From Podarcis liolepis (taxonomy: Eukaryota), in the NCBI GenBank assembly GCA_965112155.1, contig OZ218098.1: DNA of 64,000 nt. One strand, written 5' to 3'. How positions within the stretch are numbered: position 1 is the first letter of the stretch; each line of letters begins with the position of its first letter. The position numbers and the translations under genes were made by a program. The notes beneath the pieces are model-generated. The model had not been told where the DNA came from, ran no database searches, and saw nothing but the letters and a program-made list of their open reading frames with translations. Positions 13,501 to 54,071 of this stretch are shown piece after piece.

Positions 13501-15480
13501 TTGCAAATTGACAGGTAGGGTCGGGTCCTGCTGAGTGACTCAACAAAAACAAAAAACAAAAAAAGGTTTCTCACCTAGGAGAGGCCAAAACTCCAGATAT
13601 GCTTAACAGTCCAAAAAGAAGCGGCGAGAGAATAGGGCAGCTTAATTAGGATGTATTACCTCTCCAATGCAGTAAGTGGAAGCAACTGGCTTCAGATTAG
13701 TGTCAAACTGCTCTTTAAAAAGTTAAGCGCTATCTCATACAGGGCTAGGCAGATTTCAGACTTGTAGGGTCTACTCTACTAGAACCCTCAGGGCCACCAA
13801 ACGGAGACACATGAAAAGTTGGAGCTAGCTCCTCCCGTTGTGCATTATGCTAAGAATTAGGGGACTTCTAGGGTTGCCATATTTTGAAGACCAAAAAGGG
13901 GGCACATTTTCCAACTTCTACTTTTAACTATGGATTGCTATGACAACTCTCATTTTACGTACTCATAAAAAACAGGATGTGCATGCTGGACCCGGTAATT
14001 TGTAATCAGTACTAAAACCAGTGCATTTTCACTGCACCACCCACACTGCCACCTTGACCCTCCCAGTAAGCAGCAGTGAATCACCTGTTGGGAGGGCAGG
14101 TAAGCGTCTCCAACCCATGACACCATCTGCTACTGGGCAGAACATTACATTTGTTCAATTGCATCATTACTTGCTTATCCCCAAGTTACTGGGTTACTCC
14201 TAATAACATATTTTAAGATGCACTGCATAAGAGGCCAACCACACATGGTCTTCAGCATAGTTTATGTAGCCAAGGATAGCCTTGCTAAGTGTCTGGTGCA
14301 CTGGTGATCGCAACAGTTGGTTACTGTATTGCCCTTCATATGAGACTGCTGTTAAATTTGCCAGAAACCTGCAACTAGTACAGAACACAGCAGCTGGCTT
14401 AACTGAGTTATGTGCCTGACTGTGGCACGCAACACCATTGCTAAAGGAAGTGTACTGGCTGCTGCTTTGCTATTAAGCCAGGTTTAGGTATTAACCTAAA
14501 CAACATGGAACCAAGAGAATGCCTTCTCCCATACAGAGGTGACCAGTTGTTAATATAATCTGCAGAGGTCCTCCTGATTGTGCCACAGCCTCCAAACTTC
14601 CATCTGGCATCAACCAACACCCTTTCTGTGGGGGTACCTGCTCTCTTGAATGGTATCCCCATGCTAATTTTCTCTCTCTCTTTTTACCATGGCTTTTGCT
14701 ATCTACCATTAGCAGCTGTTTACTGTCTACTTGATTATATAGACATTACATTTTATTATATTGTTGTACACTGCCTTGACATGCCCATATAACAGCTGGT
14801 ATATCAATATTTTAATTTAATTGATTAAACATTGTCATGACTGCCATTCCATTGATATTTTAATGATAAATCATGGGTATCATGAAATATAATGATGTAC
14901 AATCATGACAAAGACACGGCTCTCCCCAGTTCCATTGACCTGAATAGAAACTCATTCACCTAGGTAGTTCTATTCCAAGCAGCCCTGAATAAGAACACCC
15001 TGTACCTATTTTCATTTTCAATTTATAAGGAAGGGTCAAGTGTCCTAAACTGATGTGTACAAGAAAAATGATCAAGAGCTCTCTCCCCAGGCACCTGTGT
15101 CCCCTTCCCAGTCTGCTCTGGCAGGAAACCTAGAACAGAGGGCACACAAGAAGAGAGGCAGGCAAAATTATGCTGTGAGAGCAAAAATCTTTCCACAAAC
15201 AGAATGGCCTCATTGGATACAGTCCCTTAGATGAGGAAACTGGAGACTCATGCAAATAGTGCATTAGATAATTTTGCATATGCAAGAGATATTGACAAAG
15301 AAAATGGCTTAGAAATGGAAGACACAACCTATTCTTGTTTGAAATGAATAACATGTGATAAGTAGACTAGATAGAAGACTAGTTTAAGAAACTCATCATG
15401 TGGCTTTGGCCAAGTCGCATCTGAGTTACTGTTATATGCATCCTAAGTATGCCTAAGGGGGGGAAAGCACCTTCATATTA

Positions 15481-28066: not shown

Positions 28067-28498
28067 TGTAATGTGTATGGGTTGCTCATGCGTAAGTTGC
28101 CGCCTCTCCAGGCTTTGTTGCCTTGCTAAACCTTTCAGTCTGGGTAGCCCTTCACTTTGTGGCTGCCTCAGTCGCTAGCAGAATCCGTCAGTGGGCGTTT
28201 CTTAAATCTTTTCCAACATAAAAGTTGTTTGACACCCAGTCTCCTCCTACTCTCTCTGCGCGGAAGTCTTCTGTGCAGGGTGCGCGTGGGTAGCGGAGGA
28301 CCTGTGCTCTCCCCGCTGGTGTCCGGTGAAGAGTCCTGGAGCCCTCTCGCCGATTCCCCCATCAGCCCCTCTATATCCCTGGTGTTGCGCTGATTTGCTT
28401 CCCCATCTGCGGAGCTGCCTCTCTCCCTGCTGGGCCCTTCTCCAGCATCATTTGAGAGCCTTCCCTCCGCCTCTAGCTCCAATGTCAGTTCCCTGGCA
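28067..28498 (-). mobile_element. Solo LTR (432 bp), probably Gypsy
   Basis: TG...CA termini, near-perfect 5-bp TSD GGTAC/GGTGC, GC/CpG-rich island in AT-rich DNA, open frame 28497-28168. Confidence 0.8.
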
Positions 28499-30850
28499 GG
28501 TGCTTTTAAAAGAACCTTCCTCAGGCCACACAGGTTTATGTATGCTTAGAGAAGGAACATGCATATGCTGGCAGCCAGGTGCAGGGCACTGGGTACTTCA
28601 TCCTGATTAGGAATTAAAGCATATTAATCATAGAACCATCCAAAGTAAAGGAGCATCTGGTTCAAGGCTTTTATTTATTTATTTAAAAGAAATTCAATAA
28701 AGGGCACACAAAGGCAGTCTAAATTATCGTTGTGGCAACAGGATGCAGTGGACAAAATATTTCTTCCCTGACAAAATTAGAAGAAGATGAAGAAGAAGAA
28801 GAAGATCATTATGCCAGTCCTTAAGTCAGCAAGCTGCATAAAGATGATGGTGCCTTTCTGCAATCCAAAAAGTCCTAATACTCTGCATGAGACTAATAAT
28901 TCTAAGTGGATCTAATTAGAAACCTAGTTCTGCATCATCATCTTTATTTTTTTAAAAGAAATGGTGTACAGATCGCTCTGTTCTCTGTTGCTTGGAATAT
29001 AATCAAGATTCTGAAAGTCATTTGAATGTACCTTTGCAAATACCCCTTTCACGGGCAACAGTGCAAAGGCAGAGGGTGCAGTGCTAGCCTGTTTTACTCA
29101 CTTTTGCTCCCTATATAAAAGGTAATGGGAAGACATGCCCTGGGTCTGCCCCTTTCCATAGAAACATGATCTGACACTGCTAGGAGAAATGCAATTCTGT
29201 TTGTGATACTTGAGTGACCCCTATAGGATACTTCTCAAATTATTGCTTGAACTCAACAGTGCAAAAAGACTGACAAGTTTACACCACGGAAGATTGGATT
29301 GTTACACCCCAAACAAATAGAGGATTGCAGAGGATATGTTTGAGAATCCTCCACTTCTATCCTGCTTCCCCAGGGGATAGTCAATATGTATGCTTTGTTT
29401 CTCGCAGTGGGAATTTTAAAAGCATGCATAATAATGGTGAGGAGGATGATTTTTTTTAGGTGAAGGTTGTAATCTCATGCAAAGGAATGAGCCTTGAACT
29501 CATCGCAGTTTACATCTGATTAAACAGGCAAAGGACAGGACAGTATTATTATTATTATTTTAGCCTATTATAATTTTTTCATTGAATAATAATATTTTTC
29601 AAAATGCAAACAAAAATCAAGTTCAGTCTTTTTCTACACGTGCATATTTCCCAGTTTATAAAAGTTTAAGGTAAGTTATGCAAATATCCTCAGGCCTATG
29701 CAAATGCGTGCAAACTCTTCCACAGCAAGCTTCTGTTGTTTTCACCTTTTCCTCCACAACCTGCTTGTAGCTTCTGCACATATGCTTCCCCGCTCCAAAT
29801 ATCTAATGATCAGACTGTTTCAATATTTAATTTCTACATATTGACATTTTCTCACAAAACTCAGGTGCACCTATTCACCTTCCGATATGTTTTATGCCGT
29901 GTGCTGATAAGAAGAGGCTGGAAGAATCTTGAGACAGGTCCATAAATTGCACAATTGCCAATATACAGGTTAGGTTTGTTTCAGGTACTTTGTTGTTGTT
30001 CACTATTACAACTCTTTTGTGTATCCTTATTCTTAAAATTAAAAGAATAGATCATCAGAGTTATGCATGAAGAGGAGTGGGGCAATGGCAAGAGAAAATG
30101 CACAATAGCGATTCAGCCCATAACAGTTACACAAAGTGTTTCATTACTATTAAGATACTCAATTTTCCCCCCAAGGAAAAGTTGATGGTATGATTTATTT
30201 ATTTATTTATTTATTTTTACACAGCATGCAGGAAAAATAAAGAAATGTTCCATCACCATGCAGCTGCTTTTGGCAAGCAATGACCCCCCATCCCATTCCA
30301 GTTTAATTTTGTGTGTGTGTGTGTTTAATAGCTCTGGAAATCCATGTTTTTAAATTTCATGGAATGGCCGCGCATTTGCAGATATAAATTATTATTATGT
30401 TGCTTCTTCCAGGTTGGGATATGTGTGACTTGTAAATTAAGGAACAGTTTATTTCTATGGTCTATCACACACATTTCGTATTCAACTCTATCACTTTAAC
30501 CCTTTCCTATATTATCATTTCCTGTATATTTTTCTCCATCTTCTGAATTGCAGCAGGAGCAATCACCGCAGGAGTACAGCCAGAGGGAAGGAAGTGTTTA
30601 GCTCTTTCCCAACACAATGGTCCCACTACAAGTTGCTCCACCCTAAAAAAAAAACGACTGGAGCTGGGTAAAGGGTGATTTATGTCCTCCTTCATTACAG
30701 GGTATTAGAAGTTTGGAAGCTAAATTCTTGTTCCACTTCTAGCTTAAAGCAGAAAAACAATGAACTGTAGCTGGTGGTCCACAGCACATCTATGGCACAA
30801 ATGGATTACAAAATTCAGAGGCATGCAACTTTCAATGGGTGGCTGTGTTT

Positions 30851-30921
30851 TGGTTAAGAACAGTTTCGGGTTAAGAACAGACCTCCAGAACGAATTAAGT
30901 ATGTAACCAGAGGTACTACTG
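30851..30921 (-). mobile_element. Inverted end fragment of the same MITE
   Basis: GTTAAGAACAGACCTCCAGAACGAATTAAG...AGGTACTACTG|TA is the reverse complement of the start of the 36021 element. Confidence 0.75.
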
Positions 30922-32605
30922 TACATTTAAATCACTAAGATTCCACTTTAAACTGTCATGGTTCCTCCCACAGAATCCTAGGAACTGTAGTTTTTAATTG
31001 TTGTTAGGAGATCCTTATTCCCCTAACAAGCCTACAATTCCCAGAGTTCTCTGTGAAGAGACAGCGATTGTTAAACATGGAGGGCTCATCCATACTATCT
31101 TTTCCATGCTTCCCAGTCCGTCTCTGAGCACTTCTCCCCGGGGTATCCTAACAACTGTCAGCACCCTTAACAAACCACAGCTCCCAAAATTATTTGGGGG
31201 AAGCCATGACTGTGGTATCAATTTTTTAAATGTGTGGCATGACTGTGGCTTAAGTAATATTTAGGGTGACATGTATCACACATTGTACTCATTTTCTTTC
31301 CCCCCTCAAGCCTTCGTCTGCTACTCTGTTTTAAAAACGAATATTAAAGAAACAAAATGCTTCTGATTTTATGTTAGTGGTACACTATGAGGATAAATGC
31401 TACTCAAATGGCTTCCTTTGTTTTGAGCAAAACATAGTTTGCGGGCATAGAAATTGCAGCTATCCTTGCAAGAAGACCACTGAGTAGCAGGAAGTTTACA
31501 GAAAGGTAGTTATTAAAGGTAGCAGGTAGGGAAGGGCGGAAACCTCAAAATGCACAGGAATATGTTTCAAACCAAGGCATTTCAAATAAGAGTCTTAATA
31601 TAAAACAATGAAATAATGAAAACAAACAAAATAACAGGCACAAAACTTAGCAATTTTCACAAAAGACAGTAAAAAATATAAACCAGGACAACCAAATCAT
31701 GGCATTTTGATCACATTAAAGTACAAAAGAAACACACCTCAAAACCTTCTAAATAATGGATATCAATAGCAGTGCAAAGAAAAAAAACAGACAGATATGG
31801 CCTCAAATAGACAATACTTGAAAAATGCCTTGCTTTTGCTGGAAAAGGAGAGGATAAACTAACCTCTTAGTTCATGAGCTTAGTTCCTCAGCCTCCAGCC
31901 TAGCCTGCATGAGTTTGCTAGATCACTGCCAATAATGTGGTGGGAGAAACCCTGAGGAACCACAGGTGTGGCTCATATCCAGAATCTGTAAGCCTCCAAT
32001 TGCCATCCTAATTATGCCTGCAAGGAAAGGAGATTAACTCTTTAGTTGCACTGAGAGACTTCCAAGTAGCGGAATGAGAATGCAAGAGAATCCAGCTCAT
32101 TTCTGTTTTTCACGGGAGCTGTCATGATGAGCTCCAGAAGGCATCATTACACCACTGAGGTAAACAAGGAAGGAACTCCTTGAGAGAAAGTCGTAGGTTC
32201 TACGATAAGCATATCCTGTTACCTTCCGCTCTCTCCTAGCTTTTCTTCTCCCACCCACTAAGTAGTTGAAGAAGAGAAGATGCACAACTGACACACATTC
32301 ATAGTAAATGGATCTCCATTTCAGACAAATTAGGGTGGCCGGAGAGAAGAGAGGACAGGGTTGCTGCACTTTCAATGGTTGGATAGGAAAAGAAATTTCA
32401 TCAGGTGTCATTTGCAGCCACACCTTATGGACTGCCATTTTCTGCACAACTTCTGTCCTGTCCTTTTTGCAGCTGGACACCTAAGGCTGAAACTACCACT
32501 GTCACCTTTGAAAGATACACCCACACACCTCTCACTATCTTTCATCCAGACAAGAAAGCAGCATTACCAGAGTGCAAGAACAGATTTTAGCCTGGCAAAA
32601 ACACT

Positions 32606-32647
<42 letters not shown>

Positions 32648-34517
32648 AAAGCAGGACTGGGGAAGGGTGTAGCCTGGCAAGAAGGGGTGTGGCTGTGGAG
32701 AGGAGAGTCCTGAGGGATAGACAGGGAGAGTTGTGTGACTTAGAAAGAGCCCCAACAGCCATATGAGGGCTGGGTCTATACTCACTCTTTATTTTTATTT
32801 TTATTTTTATTTTTATTTTTTGCTTTTTATTGAGTTTTAAATTGGTTACTCATATACATATTCCATTCACTCTTTAACATATATTGTACACATATAAAAA
32901 CCAAACAACAATATTTCTACACTCTTTAAATGCATTTGGTTTCTCAGTTCACTTTTCTTTTCACTTATTTCACAGGTAGAACTTTGCAGCATCCTCTGGT
33001 GTCAGATTCTTAATAACGCATTATTTACATTTATCATAACCCTTTATAAACTCATTTTTAGTGTTAAAAACCACAAGTGTAGATGAGTCCCAAGACCATG
33101 GGCCTGAGGTTACCAATCCCCAAGCTTGTTCAAAAACTGTGGGTACTGAATATAGCAGTTCACAGAAGTGGATTTGAGTTATGGACTCAGGAACCTTGAG
33201 GATCTCTGTTGGTGCCTGTATCTATTGCCTCATCCAGTATATCTTATACATAGCCCTGCCTGCTTTTCCCGCACCACAACACTGTTCAGAGGTCAGAATG
33301 AGGCTCCTTCCACCCTATTGGGATTAGCCTCAGTATTCTGTTGTTGCATCAACAGCTTTCCAAGCGAACTTTCACCACACATAAAGCCAAGCTAGCTATC
33401 TGGTGTAGGGGTTGCCTGCTTTTCCCCCTGTCCTCATTTTTCACAAAATGCATTAAAATGCCATTTGTTGCTTTTCACCCATCACAAAGTCCGCTGCATC
33501 TTTCTGGGAAGGACAGATTTGCTGTTTTCCAAGAGGAACCACTAAACTTGTACTTTATAAAGTGAAGCCTATAACTCAATCTTTGCGAGTCAATGCCATT
33601 TCCAGACAAAGTGAGATCAATGAGTACAAGACGAATGATAACCCTCTTCAGTTACAATGAAGTATACAGCTCAGATCCTTTAAATCAAAGACCTAAGTGT
33701 ATAGCGGTGATATCTCTTAAGCTATGTACAGAGCCAACTCCTGAGGTGGGCACATGATTACTTTAAGGGAGATGGCAAGTGAGGGCAGAAAGGAACTGGA
33801 TAATCGATCTTGTCCTTGCACTACAAAAGGTGCTTCTAAATGATAAGGTGGGGAATGAGCAGAATCAATGAAAATTCCCATTGCCTCCATTCTACAGAAA
33901 TACCTTTAGGCAATCAGTCAAAATGCACTTCACACATGTGAGCCTGCAAGCTGAGGTAACATCCCCATCACAGAGAGAGGCTCTGTCAGTTCAAAGTTTG
34001 TCTTGTCTACTCAGAGCTCAACCCACAGGGCTCAGCAGCAGTCATATAAGGGAGATAGATATGCTCCTTGCCCCTGCCCCCCAAGTTTGACATTGTGTAG
34101 TGTGCAAAAGAAAGACAACGTGGAAGTGAACATAACTTTTTCTTCTGCCAGTGCAATTGCCCTCAAGAGACGAAGGAGGAAGGACCTATTTGCAGCCTCT
34201 CAGATGTGATATTTGGCTTTGGAATGAAGGCAACATCTCAATTTTAGTTAATGAAACTATATAGTTTCAGAAACCATCACAACAAAACAGCATATATATT
34301 CATGGAGTGGAGTGCTACTCATGTTTTATCTGAAGAGGGCCTTTCTGTGCTTGCTCAGTGGGGTTTGCTTTCAGGCAAAACTTGCTTGGGATTGCAGCCT
34401 TAAGCAAACATTTCCTTGTTTGTCTGACTGTAGACTAGAGATGGCAAACAGGCAGCCCCTGGCCCAGACTGGATTCATGAAGCTGTTCTTATCATGCCTG
34501 TGTGTGGTTAAAAACAA

Positions 34518-34598
<81 letters not shown>

Positions 34599-35236
34599 TT
34601 CTATACATAATGTTTTGTCTTGGTGTGGCATTGCACATAAGATCCAGCCGATAGCAACTTGGAGGCAATGTGTGATGACGAAAGGCTTGGGATGCAATTT
34701 ACATGCTGCTTACTTTGGAGAAGCTTCATGAGAGAAACAATGAAATCTATGAGGCTTTTTAAGAGTAATCTCATTTACAGTAAATGCTTTGTGCATTGCT
34801 CCTTCAGGGCCTGTTTACACCATTGCCTTTGACTATTAGGGCTTACCCATATGGGCTCTAATAACAGGAACCAGGCACACAGTTTCATTACTTATCTCTG
34901 AAGTTCTGAGGTGCTCTTTTGTCTCCCCACTGCCACCAGGATTGATAGCAACCATTGTGGGCGGTGCAGTCCAACAAATGGCTTACTGGGCTCTGTGGGG
35001 ATATCCCAAAGCAAAAGGCAAATCTCAGTTCCTCTTCTTCAAACACTTTGACATGGTGCAAGACTTAATCCTCTGAACATCACAGTCTGGAGAGAGTGCT
35101 GGGGTGGTATTTAAACAGCCTGTCATCTTTTTGAGTAGTTTATATTGAGGGTCCCATCCCCCGCTCCCAACCAATAATTATTGGGTTTTAAGACACTTTA
35201 AGACACTGGAAGTCCCATTCTGGGAACAGGAGGGTT

Positions 35237-35323
<87 letters not shown>

Positions 35324-36020
35324 TTGCTTTGCAGATAATAGTTAAATAAGTGTTAAGTATAATTGATTTAATTGACACAGAAATGGAAAATGTGTGTGTA
35401 TTGATGAACGTTTAAAATGCAAAAGGCTTATATGTTTATTTCTAACACTGAACATATTTTTATGGGCCTGGACAATGATTTCTTCCGAAAGGAGTCAGTT
35501 CTTATGTTTCCAGTCATTTCAAATGGCACAATATTAATATATGAAATAATAAGTACAATGTGAAAACTCCTGCATGCTGTCCTTCCAATGGAAATGTACT
35601 GGTGTACAGAGCCTTGAACAGCATGGGCCCAGGTTATCTTACAGACTGCCTTAGCCTGCAAGACCTGAGCCAATCCCTGAGCTTTTTGCTGCAGCATGAG
35701 TGGTGCCCCATGGACCAGAAGCATGATTCATGTCATTCAGCAGCCATACCTTCAATGTAGTGTGCCCAACTCTATTGAACTCCCACTCTGTATGCCACCT
35801 TGAGACATATAGTGAAAAGTATAAATATATCAAATAAATAAATAAATAAGAGTTTATTTATTGATTTACATACATGCATAACCTCACATTTCTAATTGTA
35901 GGTTTAAAACAAACAAACAAACAAAAAACATCCCACCTTTGATTTCAGAGTAATGTTAAAACTCTTACAAATTCACTCATGAAAATTGCAAGTTACGGTT
36001 CCTGCCTTTGTTTATATGTA

Positions 36021-36251
36021 CAGTGGTACCTCGGATTAAGAACTTAATTCGTTCTGGAGGTCCGTTCTTAACCTGAAACTCTTCTTAACCTGAGGTACCA
36101 CTTTAGCTAATGGGGCCTCCCGCCGCTGCCACACGATTTCTGTTCTCATCCTGAAGCAAAGTTCTTAACCTGAGGTACTATTTCTGGGTTAGTGGAGTCT
36201 GTAACCTGAAGCGTCTGTAACCTGAAGCGTCTGTAACCCAAGATACCACTG
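36021..36251. mobile_element. Tc1/mariner (pogo/Tigger-like) MITE
   Basis: TIR CAGTGGTACC.../...GATACCACTG, TA on both sides, internal GTAACCTGAAGCG repeats. Confidence 0.88.
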
Positions 36252-41881: not shown

Positions 41882-41968
<87 letters not shown>

Positions 41969-43051
41969 GAGATTTCATCCTCTCATTCATTCCTGGCATC
42001 ATTGCCCCCATGTTTCCATACCCTTCCCATGTCCTTGATTGTGTTGTCTTTCTAGTCTCATTAGCAATGCGCAGTTGTTCCCATCCCTGGACCCTGGCTA
42101 ACCTCCCCACTTCCAATCTTCTTTTATTTACAGAACTTCCTGTGCTTACCTTGTTGGCTATTCCAGCCCTTTCCCCCATCCTCCACCTCTCAATTCACAA
42201 ACCACGTGGGTGAGGTGAACCCCAAGAGCTGTGGGTTGGTTTTCCACTTGGGGGAGGGAGAAGGAGTTCCCACTTGGAAATTCTTGCCAAAGGAGGCTCA
42301 ACTAGCCCTATTACTCTTGACATTCTTCCAACAGGCTCTCCCCCCCCCTCCAAGACAGACTATAGTGAGTTCAGTACAGATGTTCTGCCAATGCCAGCTG
42401 TCTGGAACTATTCCCACATTGCACTGAAGGAGTGTAGGGGTGGGAAATGGATGCTTCAGGGGCATGTTTCTACCTCGTAAACACCAGAGAATACCAAGGA
42501 AGGAAGACATAAGGAGGAAGGAGTCAACAGAGGAAGACAGCATGGGAAGAAAAGGAGCAGAAAGAAATACCGGAGAGGAATGATTGTAACAATAGTTAGT
42601 AATTAGGAACAAGGAGAGAGATTTCTCTCAAATACAATTTTTCATTTGACTGCTTCTCTCCTGCATCTGAGCTGGTGCCAGATGTATTGCTTTCCTTTCC
42701 TTTGGACCACATCAGTGAGTTATCTGGGCAGCCCTGGACCTCCATACACACTGTCCAGTCTTATGCCCCAGAGAGGTCACTTTGGAGCTGCAAACACAGC
42801 TCCTCTTCCGTCTCATCAACACAGACCTTTATCTCCACTACATCTAGACTTTGGATGAACATATTCTTGTGAACTTGCTGATCATTAGTAGAATGCTTGC
42901 CCTTTGACTGTGTGAGGACATGACCCTCTCAGGAGCTTCAGAATGTGGAACAAGAGAACGTCAAGTGGGGATTTAGCTTGTGCATCCCCACCCAACTCTA
43001 GCAAAAGAAGGAAATTGCAACAAAGACAGGCAGGAAAACAAGGAAGTCACA

Positions 43052-43192
43052 ATTAGTGGGTCGGTGATTCATCACCTAGACATTGTGTCCAGTAAAGCTA
43101 AACTGTATCAGCCAGATGGGGTCCATCTTACAGATGTTGGAAATAACATCTTCCTGTCTTACCTGAAGAGGGGCCTCCAAGAGGTGCTTCTC
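43052..43192 (+). pseudogene. Fragment of a TE-borne SGNH hydrolase/esterase (Ngaro-like or LINE ORF1)
   Basis: VIHHLDIVSSKAKLYQPDGVHLTDVGNNIFLSYLKRGL contains the SGNH block V DxxH motif. The N-terminal catalytic blocks are absent. Confidence 0.65.
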
Positions 43193-45870
43193 GATGGGGA
43201 AAAGGACAGACATTTGTCCCCTTTTGTGGCTGTTCAAGTGAGCTGTTCAAGGGGAGTAGTTGTGCTTCAGCCTGATGAATCCCTTTAGGCACATTTCTGG
43301 GTGATGGGCTGGCCCTGAGGCTTACTCTTTGGGCTCTGAGGTAGGATAAGAGCCCCCCTGAGGCTAAACTGCTTCTTTGACCTGAAGCTATGGGGCCTTG
43401 GGGTAGGGTGTGTGGAGCAGCATGTGGCCTGGCAATGGGAGGCAGGTTGGGAAGCCATGCCAGCAGTAGCAGACTTTGGGCTTTCAAATTTCAGCAGTGC
43501 CCTATGTGACACCAAAATTCAGGGGACCTCTACCTCTCGTCTTCTGTTCTAAGTCATTGTTTCAGGAAGCCCTGTGGAGGCCTCTCGGCTCAGTGCCCAG
43601 TGCAGGTGAACTGGTTGTATTCCCCTAAATCTGCCTCTGATGCCTATGTTTCCTGCATATTGGTTTTTTTGGGTTGCCCTAGAGGCTGCAGTTTGTTCAT
43701 GTTTGCGCCTGTACCAATGGCATTTTCCATATGCAGGGGTATTTTGTGGGTTTTATTTTTAAATTAGTTATACCACTTTGTAACTAAACTAAGTTCAACT
43801 GTCTGTGCAACTTTTTAAAATGCAATATGGTAAAGCACATGAACCAGGCCTTTGAAGAATTTGTAAGTAAACCAATCTGTACGTTATCAGATGAGTGGTC
43901 TTTTCCTATATTGGGGGAAGAGGGAAGTTTTGTAACTCACAGGGGCATGCTTTAAAGGTCTAGCAGCCTATATTTCCATGTTTTACTTTGCTGCATATTT
44001 TGGGAGTTTAAATCTCTATGGTGGTTCTCTCACCAGAGTACTTGCCCCAAACTTGGATCTTGGCATCCAGAAATTCTCATTCCTCTGTATGTATCTTTTC
44101 TGTGCACCAACAATTGAGCCATCAGGTCACAACATATTCTTGTGCCCCTGGCTCCTCTCTTACCAGATGATCAGCAGTAGTAAGCCTACTGTAAAATTGT
44201 GTGAAGACATGACCCTCTCAGTAGCTTCAGAATGTGAAACTAGAGAATGTACATCTCCACCCAGCTCTAGCCAAAGAGGAAAACGGCAACAAAAACAGGC
44301 AGGAAAGCAAGAAAGTGACTTTATGTCAGAGCAGTCATATTGTCCTCCTATTGCGGGGAGAAGAAAAAGAAAACTACAGGAAACCAGCCAGAACAGCAAG
44401 GAAACCTCTTTTATATATAATAGATACACATCTATTCTATTCTAGCTTCAAACAGAGCTTTGTGAATCTGTGACACTTGGTGCATGTAGAAAGAACTGAT
44501 TGTGAAACAAAAATAAGATACAATATACATCTATTAGAATAAACAATATGACAAATGAGATATAATACAAGAAAAATGAATAAAATCACAGTAAAGAGCA
44601 AAATGTGTTACAGATTGGAGCTAGAAACTGAAAACATATTTGAAATATAAATGATTACTAGCTCCCAGGGTTGAAATGCCTTTTGGTATATTAGCTTTCA
44701 ATTTCTGGAACACAGTTTTTAATCATTGCTAATTGTTTCCAAATCTTATTTAATGATTCTTTCTTCTTCCTTTTTAATGCCTCAAATTTGACTTCTAATG
44801 TATAACAAAAGTAATTTTAGCTATTTTCAATGCACATAACAGCAGTATATCAGGGATATTTATTTTAACTTCATTGAGATGAAAGATTATAGGTTCTAAG
44901 ATAATTGAAATTGAAAATCTCTTTGATAATCTTATCTGCCATTTCCCAAAACTTCATTGTTCTCCCACATTCCCACTCCAAGTGGTAAAGTGTCTGCATT
45001 CCAGCATTTGAGTAAGAAACCTATTGATTGCAGACCAATGCAGTATGTGGCACACCTGTTGAGAGAAGAACGTACAGCCACATCCCTAACGATCATGCCT
45101 GGGTTCAATCCAAGGTGAGAATCCACATTGCCCACGCAACATTTTTTATTGCATTGTGTGGAGAAAGTGGATAGAGCAAGGTTTTTCACCTTTTCAAAAT
45201 ACTAGAAACCAGGGCCATGCAATGAAGCTGAATGTTTGAAGACAAAAGAATATATATTTTTTGCACAGTACATTTAACAACAACAACAACAACAACAATA
45301 ATAATAATAACAATAATAATTTGCATACCACCCTTCATCTGAAGATCCTAGGACAATTCACAGCAGAAAAATACAAAATAAGAATACAAAATTATGGATT
45401 TTGTTTCCAGATGAACTAGTGATGGACCTCAACTTTGACAGCTTTAAAAGGGGATGAAACAAATCCATGGAGGAAAGAATCACTGGCTGCTCGCCTTGAT
45501 GGCTGTGTGCTACTTCTGGTATTGGAGGAGGTATAGGTCTGAACAGAACTTGCTGAAGAGCCCATTAGGGAGGGTGCCACCATGTTCATGACTTGCTTGT
45601 AGGCTTTCCTTAGTCATCTGGTGGGCCTCTAGGAGAACAGGATGCTGCGCTAGATGGGCCTTTTGTCTGATCCACCTGGGGACTGCTTATAGTTTTATCT
45701 GGTTCCACGGAGGGCTACTATTCAAGATGCACAAGGGTAACAGTTCTTTGGTCAAATGGAAATACTTGTATCATGTTTTGTTTCGTTTTCTTCCAGTATT
45801 AATAATACAATCGTCTTCTATGTCTGACTCTCAGGATCGAAGAACCCCCAGTTCAGAATAGGCTGTTGTC

Positions 45871-46277
45871 TGTTGAAGACCTGCCAACAGAGAGGGAGGA
45901 AAAAGGGGAGGGAGACAATGGAATGCAGGCAGCCGGGGAAACAAGCAGACAGACAGTGGGTGGAAGTTCATGCGATAGAGCGAGGGAACTAACGGGGAGT
46001 GACAGCTTGTCAGAAGGAGGAGGGGAGCCTGTGAGCTTCAGAACCTGCAGGAGGGGAGGGCTCCAAGCAAGGGAGCAGGAAAAGCAGCGTCATAAAAAAC
46101 GGACGCACTTCCATTTCTGTTGGAGACGGAAGAAGAACGAAAGCGAAACTTCAGTCGAGTCATTGTGACTATGATGAAAGCTGCTCAAAGAGAGAGCTCC
46201 CAAGTTTCTGTGTTTTGTTTGGCAATAAACCAACCTTTTAATTAACCGGACTCGTGTGTTATCAGCGGCCACTCACA
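45871..46277 (+). mobile_element. Probable solo LTR (~407 bp)
   Basis: TGTTG...TCACA termini, purine-rich 5' part, AATAAA near 46224, open frame 45872-46168. The TSD is degenerate (TTGTC/CTGAC), so the left boundary is uncertain. Confidence 0.6.
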
Positions 46278-47364
46278 CTGACTTTCTCACTGCTCTCCTC
46301 AATAAGGGCACTGATGTGCTATGAGTCTTACCAAATGAGTTCCCCTCCTCCAGCAAAATAATTGGAGCCATGTGATGAGATAACAGAACAAAAAGGAAAG
46401 AAAACACACACCTACATTATTTACCACCTTGGTCCCCCCCACTCCTGCTCTGACATACCCCCACACCCTGGAATTAGCTCTGAATAAGGAAAACAAATTC
46501 CCCAAGAGCATCATTTGGCAGCAGATCACTGTTTGGTTGACCTATGGCTCTTTAAATGTTGTTGAACTTCAACGCCTATCATTGCTCATCATTGGCTTTC
46601 CTGGGTGAGGCTAATGGGAACTGGAATCCAGTCACAACTGCAGGACCACAGGTTCCTCATGGTGAAAGAGCAACCCAAAGTACCCTGAATGTGTTGGTAG
46701 GCTGATAGGTACTATAATTCTAGAATGGGAGTATGGGGACCAGGGGTAGAAATGCATACACTCCAGAAATGTCAAAGATACCACTCTATAACCTCAGCCC
46801 CCAACTCAGGTTGCTTGCACGCATCTGCATGTCCACACAAATGCATGTGCCAACACAAAATTCTATGTCTAGGTGCCTTTGGCTCTGGGTGGTATTATTT
46901 TTCATTTGATAGGGCCAATAAACTTTTGGATAAGAAGTTGGCTGTAGATCACAAAGCAGATGAAATAGTGCACATATTGGCAAAAATGGGGAGGAGGGGA
47001 AGCTGTGCTGATGCCAAGTTTCTAATTATTTTCAGCCACTGCTCCCTGTTCCTGCAACTCTGTTCTTCATTTATCGGATTTCCTTCCGTGATCAGGTTTA
47101 AGATGTGAAATTGAAAAATATATTGGAAAAAGTGTAGTTGGGAGGGTGGAGGTGGATGTTCCTTCCTTATTAAAAAGAATATCAATGAAAAAACACACAC
47201 ATGAATTACACCCCCATGCTTATAACAAAGCAATAAAGTCCTCTTAGCATGCTTCCAGAGATTGCATCCCTCCAGGGCATATTGTAAGTGAAAGGTGCAC
47301 TAATTATGCATGTCCAACACATGGAAGTCAGATGAGGACTTTGCCTGCTGCTACTAATCCAAGC

Positions 47365-47379
47365 TCCTGCCAACCTAGC
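47365..47379 (+). mobile_element. Left piece of a 5'-truncated Sauria SINE interrupted by the Gypsy element
   Basis: TCCTGCCAACCTAGC continues as AGTTCGAAAGCAC... after the element; preceded by the SINE TSD TACTAATCCAAGC (47352-47364). Confidence 0.85.
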
Positions 47380-48012
47380 TGTGCTGGTCCCGGGGGTAAG
47401 GTACCGTGGGTGTAGCAGAGTCCACACGAAGAGGGGCAAGGTCCGAGGCAGAGAGCCGGGCGGGGAACAGGTACGCTGGAACAGGAGGCTGTGCAGGGAA
47501 CAGGAACACCGGATGGTCGGGAACAGGAGGCCGAGCAGGGAACAGGAGTACCGGATAGTCAGGAACAGGAGGCCGAGCAGGGATCAGGAACACAGGAAGG
47601 TCCGAAGCCAACAACGACGTTGCTCCCGCAACCTGGGGCTGGGCTGACTGGGCTTTTATCCTCTTCTAAGGCCAGGGGCGGTCCCGGCCCCCAGGAGCCC
47701 CGCCTCCTCTGGCCTTAAGGCGAGCACTCCTCCTGGGGGCAACCAGTTCCCTTCGCCTCTCTGCCCTAAGCCTCTGCAGATCAGGAGAGGCCGAAGGGTT
47801 ACTGGGCCCTGGAGGAGGCTCACCTGTGGCCACTGAGTCGTCAAGCCTCTCTGGGGCCAGAAGGGTTTCACCTGGGGCCAGCTCCTGATGCACTGCCACA
47901 GGTGCAGGTTCTTCAGCATCTAGGCCTTGCCCCAGTTCAGCCGGCCCTGGAGTCTTGTGCAGGCTGGGATTCCTCTGTTTCATCCTCCGAATCGGAATCC
48001 CAGGCCATCACA
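47380..48012 (-). repeat. 3' LTR (633 bp)
   Basis: Direct repeat of 52394-53026, immediately preceded on the minus strand by a polypurine tract. Confidence 0.98.
47666..47983 (-). CDS. Putative U3-encoded protein (105 aa), acidic/Pro-rich with basic C-terminal region containing PRRSARLK; identical copy at 52680-52997
   Basis: ATG with A at -3; the ORF fills U3 and stops 5 nt before the TATA-like box; it is in the +1 frame relative to the pol tail. Translation is not demonstrated. Confidence 0.45.
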   Translation of the reverse strand: MKQRNPSLHKTPGPAELGQGLDAEEPAPVAVHQELAPGETLLAPERLDDSVATGEPPPGPSNPSASPDLQRLRAERRRELVAPRRSARLKARGGGAPGGRDRPWP

Positions 48013-51000
48013 CCATCCCCCCTCCCAGGCCCCCCCCTCAACCGAGGGTCCGGACCCGGCTTGCCGGGGTACGTCGCATGGAACTCTCGGAGGCAGGCAG
48101 GTGCGTGGACGTTGGCCGCTGGTTCCCAGGAACGGTCCTCCGGTCCGTACCCCTTCCAGTCAATGAGATACTGCAGCTTTCCCCTGCGGTATCGGGAGTC
48201 CAGGATGCGTTCCACCTCGTACTCAGGCTCTCCCCGAACCAACACTGGCTGCGGTCGGGGACGGTTCGGGTGGAACTCGTCGGGTGGGGCCACCGGACTC
48301 AAAAGGGACCTGTGGAAGACCGGGTGAACCTTCAGGGTTGCGGGTAACCGGAGACGAAATGCCACAGGAGAGACTTGGTCTACGATAGGGAACGGGCCGG
48401 TGAAGCGGGCGTCCAACTTCCGCGAAGGTCGAGAGGGGTGGAGGTGGCGAGTGGAGAGCCAAACCAGGTCACCGACGCGAAGTTCCGGCCCCACCTGGCG
48501 GTGGCGGTCGGCCTGGGCTTTGTACGCTTCCTTGGCCTGGTGCAGTTGCTCCACCAAAAGCTGTTGCTGGGACTGGAGCTCTTGAAGCCACTCCGTCACC
48601 GCCGGGACCGCGGACGCCGGCAGCACCTCTGGAAACAGCCGTGGATGATAACCATAACTGGCCTGGAACGGGGTCTGCTGGGTGGACGCATTCACCGCGT
48701 TGTTATAGGCGAACTCTGCCAATGCCAGGTGGTCGACCCAGTCATCCTGCTGGTAGCTGCAGTAACACCGGAGGTACTGCTCCAGCACCGCGTTCGCCCG
48801 TTCCGTCTGGCCATCGGTCTGTGGGTGGTAGGCTGACGAGAGGCAGACCTCTGTCCCGAGGGTCTGGTGTAATGCTCGCCAGAACCGGGATGTGAACTGA
48901 ACGCCCCGGTCGGACACCACACGCTCAGGTAGGCCATGCAAGCGGAAGACATGCTGAAGGTACAGCTGAGCAGTTTCCTTGGCTGTGGGTACAGATGGAC
49001 AGGGAGCGCAGTGCACCATCTTGGTGAAATGGTCGGAGAAAACCAGAAGGCAGGTACAGCCACGAGACGAGGGTAAGTCCACTATAAAGTCCAATGAAAC
49101 CGTGTGCCAAGGACGCGGTGGAACTGGCAATGGCTGAAGTAGGCCGGGGGGTCGCCCGGTAGGTCCCTTGGCGCGCCGGCAGACATCACAACCAGCAACG
49201 TAGCGAGCCACGTCAGCCTTCAGGCGGGGCCACCAAAACTCTCGACTGACCAGATGGGTGGTCCGATACCGTCCAAAGTGCCCCGCTGCTGGGGCATCAT
49301 GGGCCATCCGGAGAACCTCCAGCCGTAGTGGCCCTGGCGGGATGTACAGACGACCGTGATGCAGCAGAAGGCCCTGATGCAGGACCAGTCCCGGATACTG
49401 TGGGCTGGACCCTTCAGCCAGCTCCCGGAGCCGATCCTGGGCCCAAGCGTCGACCCGCTGCTGTTCCCGCACCCGAACCTGCAGTGGCTGCGCCTCCTGG
49501 GTGGCCAGGAATGCAGCCGGAGGTAGGATCGTGGTGGGTTCTGCTTGCTGTACCGTGTCTGCGTTGTCTTCAGGTTTCCGGGACAGGGCATCCGCCTTCT
49601 GATTCTGAGAGCTAGGGATGTAGCGGATCCGGAACTGGAACCGGGAAAAGAACAACGCCCACCGGATCTGTCTTTGGTTCAGCTTGCGGGTGGTCTGGAG
49701 GTACTCCAGGTTCCGGTGGTCGGTTCTCACCTCCACCGGATGTCGTGCCCCCTCAAGATGGTGGCGCCAGACCTCAAAGGCTACCTTGATGGCCAGTAGT
49801 TCCCGCTCCCACACAGTATAGTTACGCTCCGCTGGTAGGAGCTGGCGGGAATAGAAGGCACAGGGTAAGAGTGGCGCTTCAGGCCCAATCTGTTGAGACA
49901 AGACGGCACCGAGAGCCGTACTGGAGGCGTCGGTCTCCACCACAAAAGGTCGAGAGGGGTCAGGATGTTGTAAGATTGGTGCCCTCTGGAAACAGGCCTT
50001 CAACCCCTGAAACGCCTCCTCTGCCTCCTTGTCCCAGGAAAACGGCGTCTTTGGGCGCAGTAGCCGGGTCAACGGGGTGGTGCGATGAGCATAATCAGCG
50101 ATGAAGGTCCGGTAGTAATTGGCGAACCCCAGGAAACGCTGTAGGTCCTTGCGGTTCCGGGGTGCCGCCCATTCTCGAACCGCTGTCACCTTCCCCGGGT
50201 CCATTTGCACCCCATCTGGAGAGAGCCGGTGACCAAGGAAGTCCACAGTCCGCTGATGGAACTCACACTTGCTGAGCTTTGCGTACAAACGGTGCTCACG
50301 CAAGCGCTGCAGCACGGTCCGGACATGTCCCTCATGGTGAGCCGGGTCACGGGAGTAAATCAGTATGTCATCCAAATACACCACCACGTACTTGTCTAAC
50401 AAGTCCTGAAACACGTGGTTGATGTAGCGTTGGAACACAGCAGGCGCGTTGCACAAACCGAAAGGCATAACCAAATATTCGAACTGCCCGTACCGGGTCC
50501 CAAACGCTGTCTTCCACTCATCCCCGGCTCGGATCCGAATCAAGTTGTAGGCCCCTCGGAGGTCCAGCTTGGTGAACACCTGTGCCCCTTGCACCCGCTC
50601 CAGCAGCTCCGAGATAAGGGGTAAGGGGTACCGGTCTGGGACGGTAATTTTGTTCAGGGCTCGGTAATCATGGCAAGGGCGGAGTTCCCCACATTTCTTC
50701 TTAACGAAAAGCACTGGTGCCGCGGTAGGCGAGGTGGAAGGCCTAATGAACCCACGCTCCAGGTTCTTGCGCAAGAAGTCCTGCAAAGCCTCGCGCTCTG
50801 GCTCTGTTAGGGAATATAAGCGACTCACTGGTAAAGGCGCTCCGGGTTGGAGGTCTATGCCGCAGTCAAAAGGCCGATGCGGCGGCAGCTGGTCTGCCCC
50901 CCGTTCCTCGAACACGTCCTGGTAGTCCTGGTACACGGCTGGGAGCGTGGGTGCTGCCTCCTCTGAGGGCGCGGCCGCCAGCGTTCCGGATTGAGCATGG

Positions 51001-51449
51001 GAACATGGGTCTGGGAAGTGCACGGTCCGTTTGACCCAGTCAATTTGAACGTTGTGGGCTTCCAGCCAGTCCATCCCGAGCACCAGGGGGAAGCGGGGCA
51101 TAGAAGCAATGTCCAAAGTTCGCAACTCCCGGTGCTGCTGGAGACACAGGACCAGGGGCTGGGTCTCCTGAGTAACAGCACCTGAACGCAGAAGTCGTCC
51201 GTCAATCGCTTCCACCTGGACCGGTACTGGCTTGTTCCGAAGTGGCACCTGATGATGGGTGGCAAAAGCAGCGTCCATATAGGAGTGGGTTGCCCCTGAA
51301 TCTACCAAAGCATGGGTGAGGATCCAGGGCCCCCCTGGAGGGTATAAACGTACCGAAACCATAAGATGTTGCAAGTCCATTGGTGCGGGCCCATTCTGTA
51401 CGGTTTGGGACCCCCGGTAGCTAGGGCCATCAGCTACTGGGGTTGGCGG
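47937..51449 (-). CDS. pol: Pol (protease, RT, RNase H, integrase, chromodomain), expected as a Gag-Pol fusion via -1 frameshift
   Basis: ALVDSGAT protease; LPPHR and YLDDILIYS RT; ETDAS and ERELLAI RNase H; HHCC and D-D-E (SLDF/SDRG/QTERAN) integrase; GPF motif; chromodomain EYEVERILDSR...YLIDWKGYGPEDRSWEP. The frame is open from the slippery site through the ORF-track Met at 51380 and runs 76 nt into the 3' LTR. Confidence 0.97.
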   Translation of the reverse strand, partial: PPTPVADGPSYRGSQTVQNGPAPMDLQHLMVSVRLYPPGGPWILTHALVDSGATHSYMDAAFATHHQVPLRNKPVPVQVEAIDGRLLRSGAVTQETQPLVLCLQQHRELRTLDIASMPRFPLVLGMDWLEAHNVQIDWVKRTVHFPDPCSHAQSGTLAAAPSEEAAPTLPAVYQDYQDVFEERGADQLPPHRPFDCGIDLQPGAPLPVSRLYSLTEPEREALQDFLRKNLERGFIRPSTSPTAAPVLFVKKKCGELRPCHDYRALNKITVPDRYPLPLISELLERVQGAQVFTKLDLRGAYNLIRIRAGDEWKTAFGTRYGQFEYLVMPFGLCNAPAVFQRYINHVFQDLLDKYVVVYLDDILIYSRDPAHHEGHVRTVLQRLREHRLYAKLSKCEFHQRTVDFLGHRLSPDGVQMDPGKVTAVREWAAPRNRKDLQRFLGFANYYRTFIADYAHRTTPLTRLLRPKTPFSWDKEAEEAFQGLKACFQRAPILQHPDPSRPFVVETDASSTALGAVLSQQIGPEAPLLPCAFYSRQLLPAERNYTVWERELLAIKVAFEVWRHHLEGARHPVEVRTDHRNLEYLQTTRKLNQRQIRWALFFSRFQFRIRYIPSSQNQKADALSRKPEDNADTVQQAEPTTILPPAAFLATQEAQPLQVRVREQQRVDAWAQDRLRELAEGSSPQYPGLVLHQGLLLHHGRLYIPPGPLRLEVLRMAHDAPAAGHFGRYRTTHLVSREFWWPRLKADVARYVAGCDVCRRAKGPTGRPPGLLQPLPVPPRPWHTVSLDFIVDLPSSRGCTCLLVFSDHFTKMVHCAPCPSVPTAKETAQLYLQHVFRLHGLPERVVSDRGVQFTSRFWRALHQTLGTEVCLSSAYHPQTDGQTERANAVLEQYLRCYCSYQQDDWVDHLALAEFAYNNAVNASTQQTPFQASYGYHPRLFPEVLPASAVPAVTEWLQELQSQQQLLVEQLHQAKEAYKAQADRHRQVGPELRVGDLVWLSTRHLHPSRPSRKLDARFTGPFPIVDQVSPVAFRLRLPATLKVHPVFHRSLLSPVAPPDEFHPNRPRPQPVLVRGEPEYEVERILDSRYRRGKLQYLIDWKGYGPEDRSWEPAANVHAPACLREFHATYPGKPGPDPRLRGGPGRGDGVMAWDSDSEDETEESQPAQDSRAG
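48013..48026 (-). promoter_or_regulatory. Polypurine tract GGGAGGGGGGATGG
   Basis: Purine-rich run abutting the TG of the 3' LTR. Confidence 0.9.
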
Positions 51450-51455
51450 TTTCCC
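51388..51455 (-). promoter_or_regulatory. Programmed -1 frameshift signal: G GGA AAC plus H-type pseudoknot
   Basis: Heptamer at 51455-51449 in the gag frame; 6-nt spacer; stem 1 CCCCAGUAGC/GCUACCGGGG; stem 2 GGCCC/GGGCC; pol is in the -1 frame. Confidence 0.9.
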
Positions 51456-52330
51456 TGCGGCTGGCGTTTCTCAGGGCAGGACCGAGCGAAGTGTCCACTT
51501 CCGCCACAGTAAAGACAGAGATTTCCCTCCCGACGCCGCGCCTTCTCTGCGGGGGAAAGGCGTGGCCGCACTGCCCCGAGCTGCATAGGCTCCTCCGTTA
51601 AATCAGTTGTGACCGTGGGGCTGCCGGAAAAAGCTGGTGCCGTGAACTGGGAGTGTCGGCGACCCCGGGCCTGACGACGATCCTCCAACCGGTCGTCTAT
51701 TTGTAGACTCCGTTGAATGAGAGTGTCCAGCGTGGTGGGGCGTTCCATTGTGGCCAACTGGTCCAGTACCTCGTCCGAAAGCCCTTCGAGATACTGGTCC
51801 CGCAGTGCCGAGTCATTCCAGGTCAAGTCCTGTGCCAACAGCCGAAACTCCGTGGTATATTTGGCCACCGTGGACTTGCCTTGTTTCAAACGCCGAATCG
51901 CCCGGTTGGCTTGACTCTCTTTCTGGGGGTTGCCGAACGCGGCCTCCAAATGATTGCAAAACCCCGTATAGTCTGCCAGCAAGGGGGAGTCTTGCCTGAG
52001 TAGCGGCAACGCCCACTTGGCCGCCTGGTCCTTTAACAAACTAATCAAAAAGTGCACCTTGGTGCGGTCGTCAGGAAAGTTCCGGGCTCGCCCCTGAATA
52101 TACAGCTTGGCCTGGGCCAGGAACATGGGAAAGCTGGCCGGGGCTCCATCAAATTTCTCAGGCAAAGCCACTGGGTACTTGCCCGGAGCCGGGGCGTCGG
52201 CCCCAGGAGCCGGTAGGGCTTCCAAGCGTTGCTGAAGTGCCACAACCGCGTCGCTGAGCTGCTGCACGGTGTGAGTCAAGGCCTGGTTCTCCTGGGCCAA
52301 AGCCCCCAGTGCAGCTGCCTGTTCAGCCAT
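51434..52330 (-). CDS. gag: Gag (298 aa), PEG10/sushi-type capsid plus CCHC zinc knuckle
   Basis: gccATGg Kozak context; N-terminal coiled-coil-like segment; capsid motifs LPEKFDG...FPDDRTKVHFLISLL...WA; EPMQLG motif; CLYCGGSGHFARSC (CX2CX4HX4C). Confidence 0.97.
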   Translation of the reverse strand: MAEQAAALGALAQENQALTHTVQQLSDAVVALQQRLEALPAPGADAPAPGKYPVALPEKFDGAPASFPMFLAQAKLYIQGRARNFPDDRTKVHFLISLLKDQAAKWALPLLRQDSPLLADYTGFCNHLEAAFGNPQKESQANRAIRRLKQGKSTVAKYTTEFRLLAQDLTWNDSALRDQYLEGLSDEVLDQLATMERPTTLDTLIQRSLQIDDRLEDRRQARGRRHSQFTAPAFSGSPTVTTDLTEEPMQLGAVRPRLSPAEKARRREGNLCLYCGGSGHFARSCPEKRQPQGNRQPQ

Positions 52331-52381
52331 GGCCTCTGGCTCTTCCCGAACGCACCCCTACGAAGGGGGAGTGCGGGTGTG

Positions 52382-52391
52382 GCGGGAGCAA
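52382..52391 (-). promoter_or_regulatory. Self-priming primer-binding site (TTGCTCCCGC)
   Basis: Begins after a 2-nt spacer downstream of the 5' LTR, lacks TGG, and is exactly complementary to minus-strand GCGGGAGCAA at 52643-52634 inside the LTR. Confidence 0.85.
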
Positions 52392-52393
52392 AC

Positions 52394-53026
52394 TGTGCTG
52401 GTCCCGGGGGTAAGGTACCGTGGGTGTAGCAGAGTCCACACGAAGAGGGGCAAGGTCCGAGGCAGAGAGCCGGGCGGGGAACAGGTACGCTGGAACAGGA
52501 GGCTGTGCAGGGAACAGGAACACCGGATGGTCGGGAACAGGAGGCCGAGCAGGGAACAGGAGTACCGGATAGTCAGGAACAGGAGGCCGAGCAGGGATCA
52601 GGAACACAGGAAGGTCCGAAGCCAACAACGACGTTGCTCCCGCAACCTGGGGCTGGGCTGACTGGGCTTTTATCCTCTTCTAAGGCCAGGGGCGGTCCCG
52701 GCCCCCAGGAGCCCCGCCTCCTCTGGCCTTAAGGCGAGCACTCCTCCTGGGGGCAACCAGTTCCCTTCGCCTCTCTGCCCTAAGCCTCTGCAGATCAGGA
52801 GAGGCCGAAGGGTTACTGGGCCCTGGAGGAGGCTCACCTGTGGCCACTGAGTCGTCAAGCCTCTCTGGGGCCAGAAGGGTTTCACCTGGGGCCAGCTCCT
52901 GATGCACTGCCACAGGTGCAGGTTCTTCAGCATCTAGGCCTTGCCCCAGTTCAGCCGGCCCTGGAGTCTTGTGCAGGCTGGGATTCCTCTGTTTCATCCT
53001 CCGAATCGGAATCCCAGGCCATCACA
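52394..53026 (-). repeat. 5' LTR (633 bp)
   Basis: Direct repeat of 47380-48012 with no difference seen by eye; ORF-track translations in the two copies are identical. Confidence 0.98.
52668..52674 (-). promoter_or_regulatory. TATA-like box GATAAAA of the LTR promoter (copy at 47654-47660)
   Basis: AT-rich element in a GC-rich LTR, 31 nt upstream of the predicted transcript start / self-primer at 52643. Confidence 0.65.
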
Positions 53027-53031
53027 CTAGC

Positions 53032-53849: not shown

Positions 53850-54071
53850 NNNNNNNNNNNNNNNNNNNNNNNNNNNNNNNNNNNNNNNNNNNNNNNNNNN
53901 NNNNNNNNNNNNNNNNNNNNNNNNNNNNNNNNNNNNNNNNNNNNNNNNNNNNNNNNNNNNNNNNNNNNNNNNNNNNNNNNNNNNNNNNNNNNNNNNNNNN
54001 NNNNNNNNNNNNNNNNNNNNNNNNNNNNNNNNNNNNNNNNNNNNNNNNNNNNNNNNNNNNNNNNNNNNNNN
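53850..54071. other. Assembly gap (222 N)
   Basis: Run of N. Confidence 1.

Follow-up and report, generated by a model that had tools for sequence, protein, structure and literature searches.

A probable U3-encoded integrase tail with an HMGN-like motif in a family of lizard chromoviruses

We analyzed a 64,000-nucleotide stretch of the genome of the lizard Podarcis liolepis (contig OZ218098.1 of GenBank assembly GCA_965112155.1; here called the window), which carries a full-length Ty3/gypsy chromovirus. This element probably belongs to a lacertid family whose pol gene continues past the polypurine tract into the 3' long terminal repeat (LTR), where U3 would encode a C-terminal tail of integrase that ends in a short motif resembling the nucleosome-binding motif of HMGN proteins. 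The window's own copy of this frame is broken; unbroken copies are found among relatives in Podarcis muralis, and a sister family in Anolis carolinensis has a tail of the same kind. Taken as a whole, these sequence data are best explained, in our judgment and with moderate confidence, if the coding U3 specifies a maintained integrase tail with an HMGN-type nucleosome anchor. Feature coordinates are collected in Table 1.

The element has the organization of a chromovirus (Metaviridae): TG..CA LTRs with a target-site duplication (TSD), gag followed by protease, reverse transcriptase, RNase H, and integrase (PR-RT-RH-IN), and a chromodomain at the integrase C terminus. Because its LTRs are identical and the GCTAG TSD is intact, the insertion is very recent. 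Its pol product is ~99% identical to P. muralis UniRef protein P0001, for which the precomputed Pfam annotation lists RVP_2, RVT_1, RT_RNaseH, Integrase_H2C2, rve, and SH3_Tf2-1; Pfam searches found the same set in P0004 and P0010, as well as the Chromo family (PF00385; E = 8.5e-16) in P0133, and the window pol encodes the same 34-residue stretch. At the gag/pol overlap (51380-51440), gag ends as ..GNRQPQ* and the pol frame is already open beside it (..PPTPVADGPSYRG..), which is the overlap usual for gag/pol frameshifting; in two database models, P0132 and P0134, the gag and pol frames are merged into a single protein.

As the original prediction stated, pol enters the 3' LTR via the purine-rich tract, in the phase that starts at nucleotide 2 of the LTR (T|GTG ATG GCC TGG, VMAWDSDSEDETEES); this boundary is fixed by the window's two identical LTRs and the TSD. 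P0001 (1,240 residues) runs on from there as ...GDGVMAWDSDSEDETEESQPAQESPPPGPAELGQGLDAEEP...RRRELVAPRRSARLKARGGGAPGGRDCPWP, and its tail corresponds to the 24 LTR-encoded codons of the window's pol joined with the window's 105-codon open reading frame (ORF). The unbroken junction, ...GDGVMAWD...QESPPPG(P/L)AELGQG..., is present in six P. muralis UniRef proteins that represent three subfamilies: P0001, P0127, P0132, P0133, and P0134 are uninterrupted from the integrase-chromodomain region to ...PRRSARLKA... and the same stop, and P0230 shares the junction but covers only the first half of the tail. The Podarcis tail is 111 to 117 amino acids (aa) long: it begins with acidic Ser/Asp/Glu residues, passes through a Pro-rich middle that evolves fast, and closes with a conserved basic segment, PRRSARLKA(R/K). 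Since the stop codon lies 6 nt before a TATA-like box, coding sequence occupies LTR nucleotides 2 to 347, nearly the whole of U3; the TATA-like sequence likely marks the U3 promoter. Of the two roles first proposed for the U3 frame, integrase tail or separate accessory protein, it is the former that is borne out by the continuity of these five proteins, and the more general claim that U3 doubles as coding sequence is supported for the family of the intact element; for two solo segments discussed below it is no more than a possibility.

A search with the tail region of P0001 returned only the same cluster and one chimeric model, and the tail ORF had no match in an ESM Atlas search. That model, the Podarcis protein P0294, joins the frame of the 5' LTR (MAWDSES...) with gag and is apparently a chimera produced by annotation; P0008, a Rhineura "TM9SF2 isoform X2" model fused with a chromoviral integrase, is another. 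In the AF2 model of P0133, the SH3-like domain and the chromodomain are predicted confidently, and the tail scores below 50 in the predicted local distance difference test (pLDDT) except for a helix just before the motif; the low-confidence part of the tail is presumably disordered. AI models are of low confidence even for HMGN2 itself (PMC12487698).

In the window's copy, the pol phase closes at a TGA (47937-47939) after 24 codons of the 3' LTR, and the remainder of the tail lies one phase over; the frame of ~100 codons originally ascribed to this LTR is thus split in two. The tail part of the 105-codon ORF (93 codons) is 97 to 99% identical to P0001, P0127, and P0132 and 79 to 81% identical to subfamily 2. 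When the window is compared with the relatives by tblastn, the match runs in the pol phase as far as ..AQDS and resumes in the next phase at GPAEL, and the relatives' three prolines at the switch (PPP) are encoded in no frame of the window. The database proteins are therefore genuine unbroken copies, and we rejected the possibility that they artificially bridge a frameshift. The frame-breaking length difference, at about 47948, occurs in both LTRs and so either already existed in the template RNA or came about while this copy was reverse transcribed; that is, the break predates or accompanied insertion. Judging by its sequence, the integrase encoded by this copy would be without most of the tail, including the motif.

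Elsewhere the tail has diverged with its frame intact. Between the Podarcis subfamilies, the 330 residues before the LTR (integrase and chromodomain) are 93% identical versus 83 to 85% for the tail, in which a single indel, of six residues and in frame, occurs; there is almost no variation over some 40 residues ahead of the end, or in the stretch DSVATGEPPPGPSNPSASPDLQRLRAERRRELV(A/S)PRRSARLKA. The A. carolinensis sister family has an integrase about 60% identical to that of Podarcis, and each of the 12 Anolis proteins long enough to include the equivalent junction (GDS|VM...) has a complete 92- to 97-aa tail with the same end point; the Anolis tail is known here from protein models. Among 11 Anolis proteins, the upstream 400 residues have a mean identity of 96.6%, compared to 74% (minimum, 57%) for the tails, again with a single in-frame indel, of five residues. 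The blocks conserved in the Anolis tails are DE(E/D)ENL, LHLQE, and RRS(A/L)RIAA(K/R); the last is kept in all of them (as the variant RRSLRIAA in two copies), and the arginines at motif positions 1, 2, and 5 never change. Overall, Podarcis and Anolis tails are 26% identical. From these comparisons, the tail appears to evolve fast, like an LTR, yet its frame stays open.

Two further families, represented by P0010 and P0158, have the same junction phase (GDG|VV and RDS|VV, respectively) and acidic-to-basic tails of about 105 to 125 residues. Most other chromoviruses in our searches, mainly fungal or metagenomic, end 24 to 50 residues after the chromodomain. An exhaustive representative search with P0133 returned many chromoviruses and comparable tails in P0158 and P0230 only, and scans of metagenome and viral contigs returned only distant chromoviruses with short tails. 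As a separate observation, the short pol tails of distant chromoviruses (mostly fungal or metagenomic; P0042, P0070, P0095, P0099, P0106, and locus L004) often have PRRSS(A/V)..R(K/R)GG just before the end; the pattern RR[ST][AS] occurs 7 times in them versus 1.8 expected (1 of 1,000 shuffles), in sequences that are mutually related and at a site that adjoins the purine tract.

The conserved end of the lizard tails spells a known protein motif. RRSARLSA is the conserved nucleosome-binding motif of vertebrate HMGN proteins (PMC12487698), and functional HMGN-like motifs occur in tardigrade Dsup (RRSSRLTS) and yeast Dot5 (RRSARIAT) (PMC12487698; PMC12871379); in cryo-electron microscopy (cryo-EM) structures, the motif arginines anchor in the H2A-H2B acidic patch (PMC12487698; PMC12871379). 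The motif, with arginines at positions 1, 2, and 5, is present in 5 Podarcis and 12 Anolis proteins, and RRSAR(L/I) is common to the tails of both genera, 9 to 19 residues from the C terminus. RRS[AS]R[LI] arose in 6e-5 of trials with composition-shuffled Podarcis tails and in 0 of 200,000 with Anolis tails, and among 294 fetched proteins it is confined to these tails. The notion of a chromatin-binding module, part of the original prediction, thereby gains a concrete basis in the intact element's family, where binding is predicted from the motif; the Arg-rich ends of the two solo segments (PRRESRRRL.. and CRRGGLQAR..) fall outside the RRSAR pattern. By sequence, the tail would be HMGN-like at most at the level of the motif and not a member of the HMGN family. 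A text search of the literature found no paper linking an HMGN-like motif with integrase, and papers containing both RRSARL and "retrotransposon" concern other subjects, to judge by their titles.

We propose the following mechanism. In intact members, the pol frame continues from LTR nucleotide 2 over about 350 nt and stops just before the TATA-like box, adding a tail of 111 to 117 residues behind the integrase chromodomain. Because the U3 of the 3' LTR belongs to the genomic RNA, the tail would be translated as the C terminus of Gag-Pol and hence of integrase. RRSAR(L/I) may then use its arginines to anchor integrase to the acidic patch of H2A-H2B in the manner of HMGN, as the motif match suggests, holding the patch while the chromodomain reads the histone H3 tail; the two together would form a bivalent nucleosome tether for the integration complex. 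The acidic Ser/Asp/Glu start may modulate this tethering, and the same U3 DNA would double as promoter region.

Several observations weigh against this interpretation. The frame-broken window copy transposed very recently, so the tail is not required in cis. Resemblance to HMGN is limited to the 8-residue motif: the tail ORF had no Pfam family match at E values up to 10, including HMG14_17, and no sequence match in the PDB. The tails of P0010 and P0158 have basic, Arg/Lys-rich ends without RRSAR. Finally, the database proteins are gene models, which favor open frames and of which at least two (P0294 and P0008) are chimeric, and in a single sequence of this composition chance alone would be expected to yield an ORF of such length.

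As to function, the main rival holds that the integrase tail is real but that its basic end is a nuclear localization signal (NLS) or nucleic-acid-binding patch and the HMGN match coincidental. RAERRREL...PRRSARLKAR does resemble a bipartite basic cluster, and the shortness of the match, the missing profile match, and the ends of P0010 and P0158 would all fit; however, the tails of two families, only 26% identical otherwise, both retain RRSAR(L/I) exactly, where a generic NLS would tolerate more change, and the three arginines that are essential in Dsup and Dot5 are invariant, with Dot5 RRSARIAT identical to the Anolis motif at seven of eight positions. We regard this rival as credible but unlikely. 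Still less probable, in our view, is that pol simply runs to the first stop, so that the tail is translated but neutral and its conserved blocks are promoter or enhancer elements of U3 acting at the DNA level. The tail does evolve much faster than integrase, its conserved end precedes the TATA-like box by 50 to 80 nt, a usual place for promoter elements, and the frame-broken copy still transposed; against this, at 57 to 74% amino acid identity there are no stops, and indels are in frame only, in all proteins that reach the junction, and the conserved block matches a known protein motif. The U3 frame might instead encode a separate accessory protein, like HIV nef or mouse mammary tumor virus (MMTV) sag, from the ATG at LTR nucleotides 5 to 7 (MAWDS...), the other role suggested in the original prediction. 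In both Podarcis and Anolis the LTR does begin with an in-frame ATG (VM...), and P0294 begins at that ATG. In every unbroken protein, however, the frame is fused to pol; P0010 and P0158 have VV in place of VM and so lack the ATG; transcription of the element starts downstream of the 5' LTR's U3; and P0294, which merges the LTR frame with gag, is an apparent chimera. We consider a separate protein very improbable. An HMGN-type anchor on a maintained tail remains our preferred reading.

For the two candidate solo LTRs (here solo28 and solo46), the main rival is chance. That both are open from nucleotide 2, for 109 and 98 codons, and that both frames go from an acidic to a basic composition, with CW and a cluster of basic residues at the end, is as originally described. 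It is also correct that the three LTRs share no significant nucleotide similarity, solo28 and solo46 being weakly above block-shuffled controls (z = 2.2; 6 of 300); we rejected the idea of a single family, since the three are not alignable beyond chance. ORF length was compared with 3,000 dinucleotide-preserving shuffles per LTR. The longest sense ORF was matched or exceeded at P = 0.33 for the intact element's LTR, 0.12 for solo28, and 0.15 for solo46 (12% and 15% of trials for the solos), the T content of these LTRs is 14 to 20%, and their antisense strands also hold runs of 73 to 100 codons, those of the solos being 73 to 88 codons long. ORF length alone is therefore no evidence in such T-poor sequences. 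The claim that all three LTRs carry the frame was too strong: the window's intact element is frame-broken, and the solo frames are not distinguishable from chance.

That the solo frames are chance openings in T-poor, purine-rich sequence, with coding U3 real only in the intact element's family, has in our estimate about an even chance of being right. In keeping with it, solo28 has no homologue in a protein search, neither solo ORF is similar to any verified tail or to the other (E = 0.66 for solo28 versus solo46), both frames stay open for 16 to 23 codons upstream of the proposed LTR start, the TSDs are imperfect, and the 64-kb window holds no second copy of either segment. On the other side, a phase-2 frame that is open from LTR nucleotide 2, as is conserved in four related families, is rare among the shuffles (P = 0.017 for solo28 and 0.019 for solo46, or about 0.02 each, for boundaries chosen post hoc), and the layout (8 to 9 acidic residues in the first third and 10 to 13 basic residues in the last third) is like that of verified tails. 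Because layout and junction phase fit, the solo segments may share the tail design, and that they are LTRs of other families of the same design is a possibility to which we give somewhat less than even weight. A broader proposal is that U3 of many unrelated squamate LTR families, both solos included, is an exchangeable coding cassette for a disordered acidic-to-basic, nucleosome-tethering integrase tail, of which the RRSAR(L/I) version would be a retrotransposon-borne HMGN-type acidic-patch anchor; we think this doubtful. If it were true, LTR turnover would alter integration-site preference, and the vertebrate-restricted HMGN motif would be tied to mobile elements, with capture in either direction.

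Table 1. Positions of the chromovirus, its tail-coding segments, and the candidate solo LTRs in the window
Feature	Position	Strand	Remarks
Full-length Ty3/gypsy chromovirus	47380-53026	-	gag, then PR-RT-RH-IN-chromodomain pol; identical LTRs, TSD
5' LTR	52394-53026	-	633 bp, TG..CA
3' LTR	47380-48012	-	633 bp, TG..CA; 100% identity to 5' LTR
TSD, GCTAG	47375-47379 and 53027-53031		5 bp; flanks of chromovirus
gag ORF	51434-52330	-	298 aa; CCHC zinc knuckle; overlaps pol frame, frameshift-like arrangement
pol ORF	47937-51380	-	1147 aa; ends with IN, SH3-like domain, and chromodomain
Polypurine tract	about 48013-48043	-	G-rich; crossed by pol
First 24 LTR-encoded tail codons	47940-48011	-	pol phase; VMAWDSDSEDETEESQPAQDSRAG; acidic Ser/Asp/Glu cluster
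Frame departure from intact relatives	47947-47949	-	relatives ...QESPPPGPAEL...; length difference not a multiple of three
105-codon ORF, next phase	47666-47983	-	residues 12-105, rest of tail; identical 5' LTR copy at 52680-52997
HMGN-like motif RRSARLKA	47711-47734	-	P before, R after; 5' LTR copy at 52725-52748
TATA-like GATAAAAG	47653-47660	-	6 nt past tail stop codon (47666-47668)
42-nt tandem repeat	47478-47602	-	three copies, 85% matches; presumed R/U5; also 52492-52616 in 5' LTR
Candidate solo LTR (solo28)	28067-28498	-	TG..CA; flanks GCACC/GTACC, 4/5 match
109-codon phase-2 open frame in solo28	28171-28497	-	acidic to basic; end ..PRRESRRRLGVKQLLCWKRFKKRP..
Candidate solo LTR (solo46)	45871-46277	+	TG..CA; AATAAA at 46224; flanks match 3/5
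98-codon phase-2 open frame in solo46	45872-46165	+	end ..CRRGGLQAREQEKQRHKKRTHFHFCWRRKK..

Elsewhere in the window, two direct repeat pairs (42879-43050 and 44168-44319), 80 to 83% identical and about 1.27 to 1.29 kb apart, represent a segment that is either dispersed or duplicated in tandem; microsatellites of the compound type (GT)n(GA)n lie at 34521-34599, 41890-41968, and 32612-32645; and a GC-rich island at about 12000-14000 (52% GC, compared to about 40% nearby) lacks a convincing ORF and may be a promoter region resembling a CpG island. A run of 222 N at about 53850-54070 is an assembly gap or masked sequence.

The U3-encoded tail has counterparts in known systems: the targeting domains of chromoviruses, tethers with an arginine anchor, and U3 regions that encode protein. 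Chromoviral chromodomains have a role in heterochromatin targeting. Targeting by the integrase chromodomain has been described for MAGGY, Tf1-type elements, and plant chromoviruses (PMC3605345). The lizard elements are of the same class, with a chromatin-recognizing chromodomain at the integrase C terminus, but add 92 to 117 U3-encoded residues after it with a second, HMGN-type motif (in Anolis, at the protein level). Podarcis RRSARLKA matches HMGN RRSARLSA at seven of eight positions, with arginines 1, 2, and 5 in a presumably disordered region, and Anolis RRSARIAA comes equally close to the Dot5 motif (7/8); unlike HMGN, Dsup, and Dot5, with which there is no homology outside the motif, the carrier is a retrotransposon integrase, and nucleosome binding is predicted. 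The integrase targeting domain of Ty5 binds Sir4. Likewise, the C-terminal tail of murine leukemia virus (MLV) integrase binds BET proteins (PMC4027182). In all of these cases a short peptide at or near the integrase C terminus would direct the integration complex to chromatin; those of MLV and Ty5 bind host adaptor proteins, whereas for the lizard tail the prediction is direct contact with the nucleosome core. Coding U3 sequences are familiar from retroviruses, namely the HIV nef overlap and MMTV sag, which are separate genes with their own mRNAs. The lizard U3 would likewise be both promoter region and coding, but its frame is a continuation of pol. Viral proteins known to bind the acidic patch include the chromatin-binding sequence of prototype foamy virus Gag, the foamy-virus intasome, LANA of Kaposi's sarcoma-associated herpesvirus (KSHV), and IE1 of human cytomegalovirus (hCMV); the review that lists them names no retrotransposon (PMC9040877). 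There, as is proposed for the lizard elements, a mobile genetic element uses a short arginine-anchor nucleosome tether, which in foamy virus affects integration-site choice; those motifs differ in sequence and sit in Gag or in episome-maintenance proteins, in contrast to the lizard motif, which is on integrase and encoded by the LTR.

About 350 nt of these LTRs would be under an unusual double constraint, as promoter region and as coding sequence, which may explain the contrast between the fast-evolving middle of the tail and its fixed end. Annotators of squamate LTRs should neither dismiss long open frames automatically nor accept them on the strength of one copy. In the words of the cryo-EM study's authors, the list of functional HMGN-like motif proteins is an "untapped realm"; if our interpretation is correct, a retroelement would join that short list (HMGN, Dsup, and Dot5). 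The chromatin target choice of LTR retrotransposons is known for few systems (Ty1, Ty3, Ty5, Tf1, and fungal chromovirus chromodomains), and a chromodomain and an HMGN-type anchor on one integrase would amount to directly testable, bivalent nucleosome tethering by a vertebrate retrotransposon.

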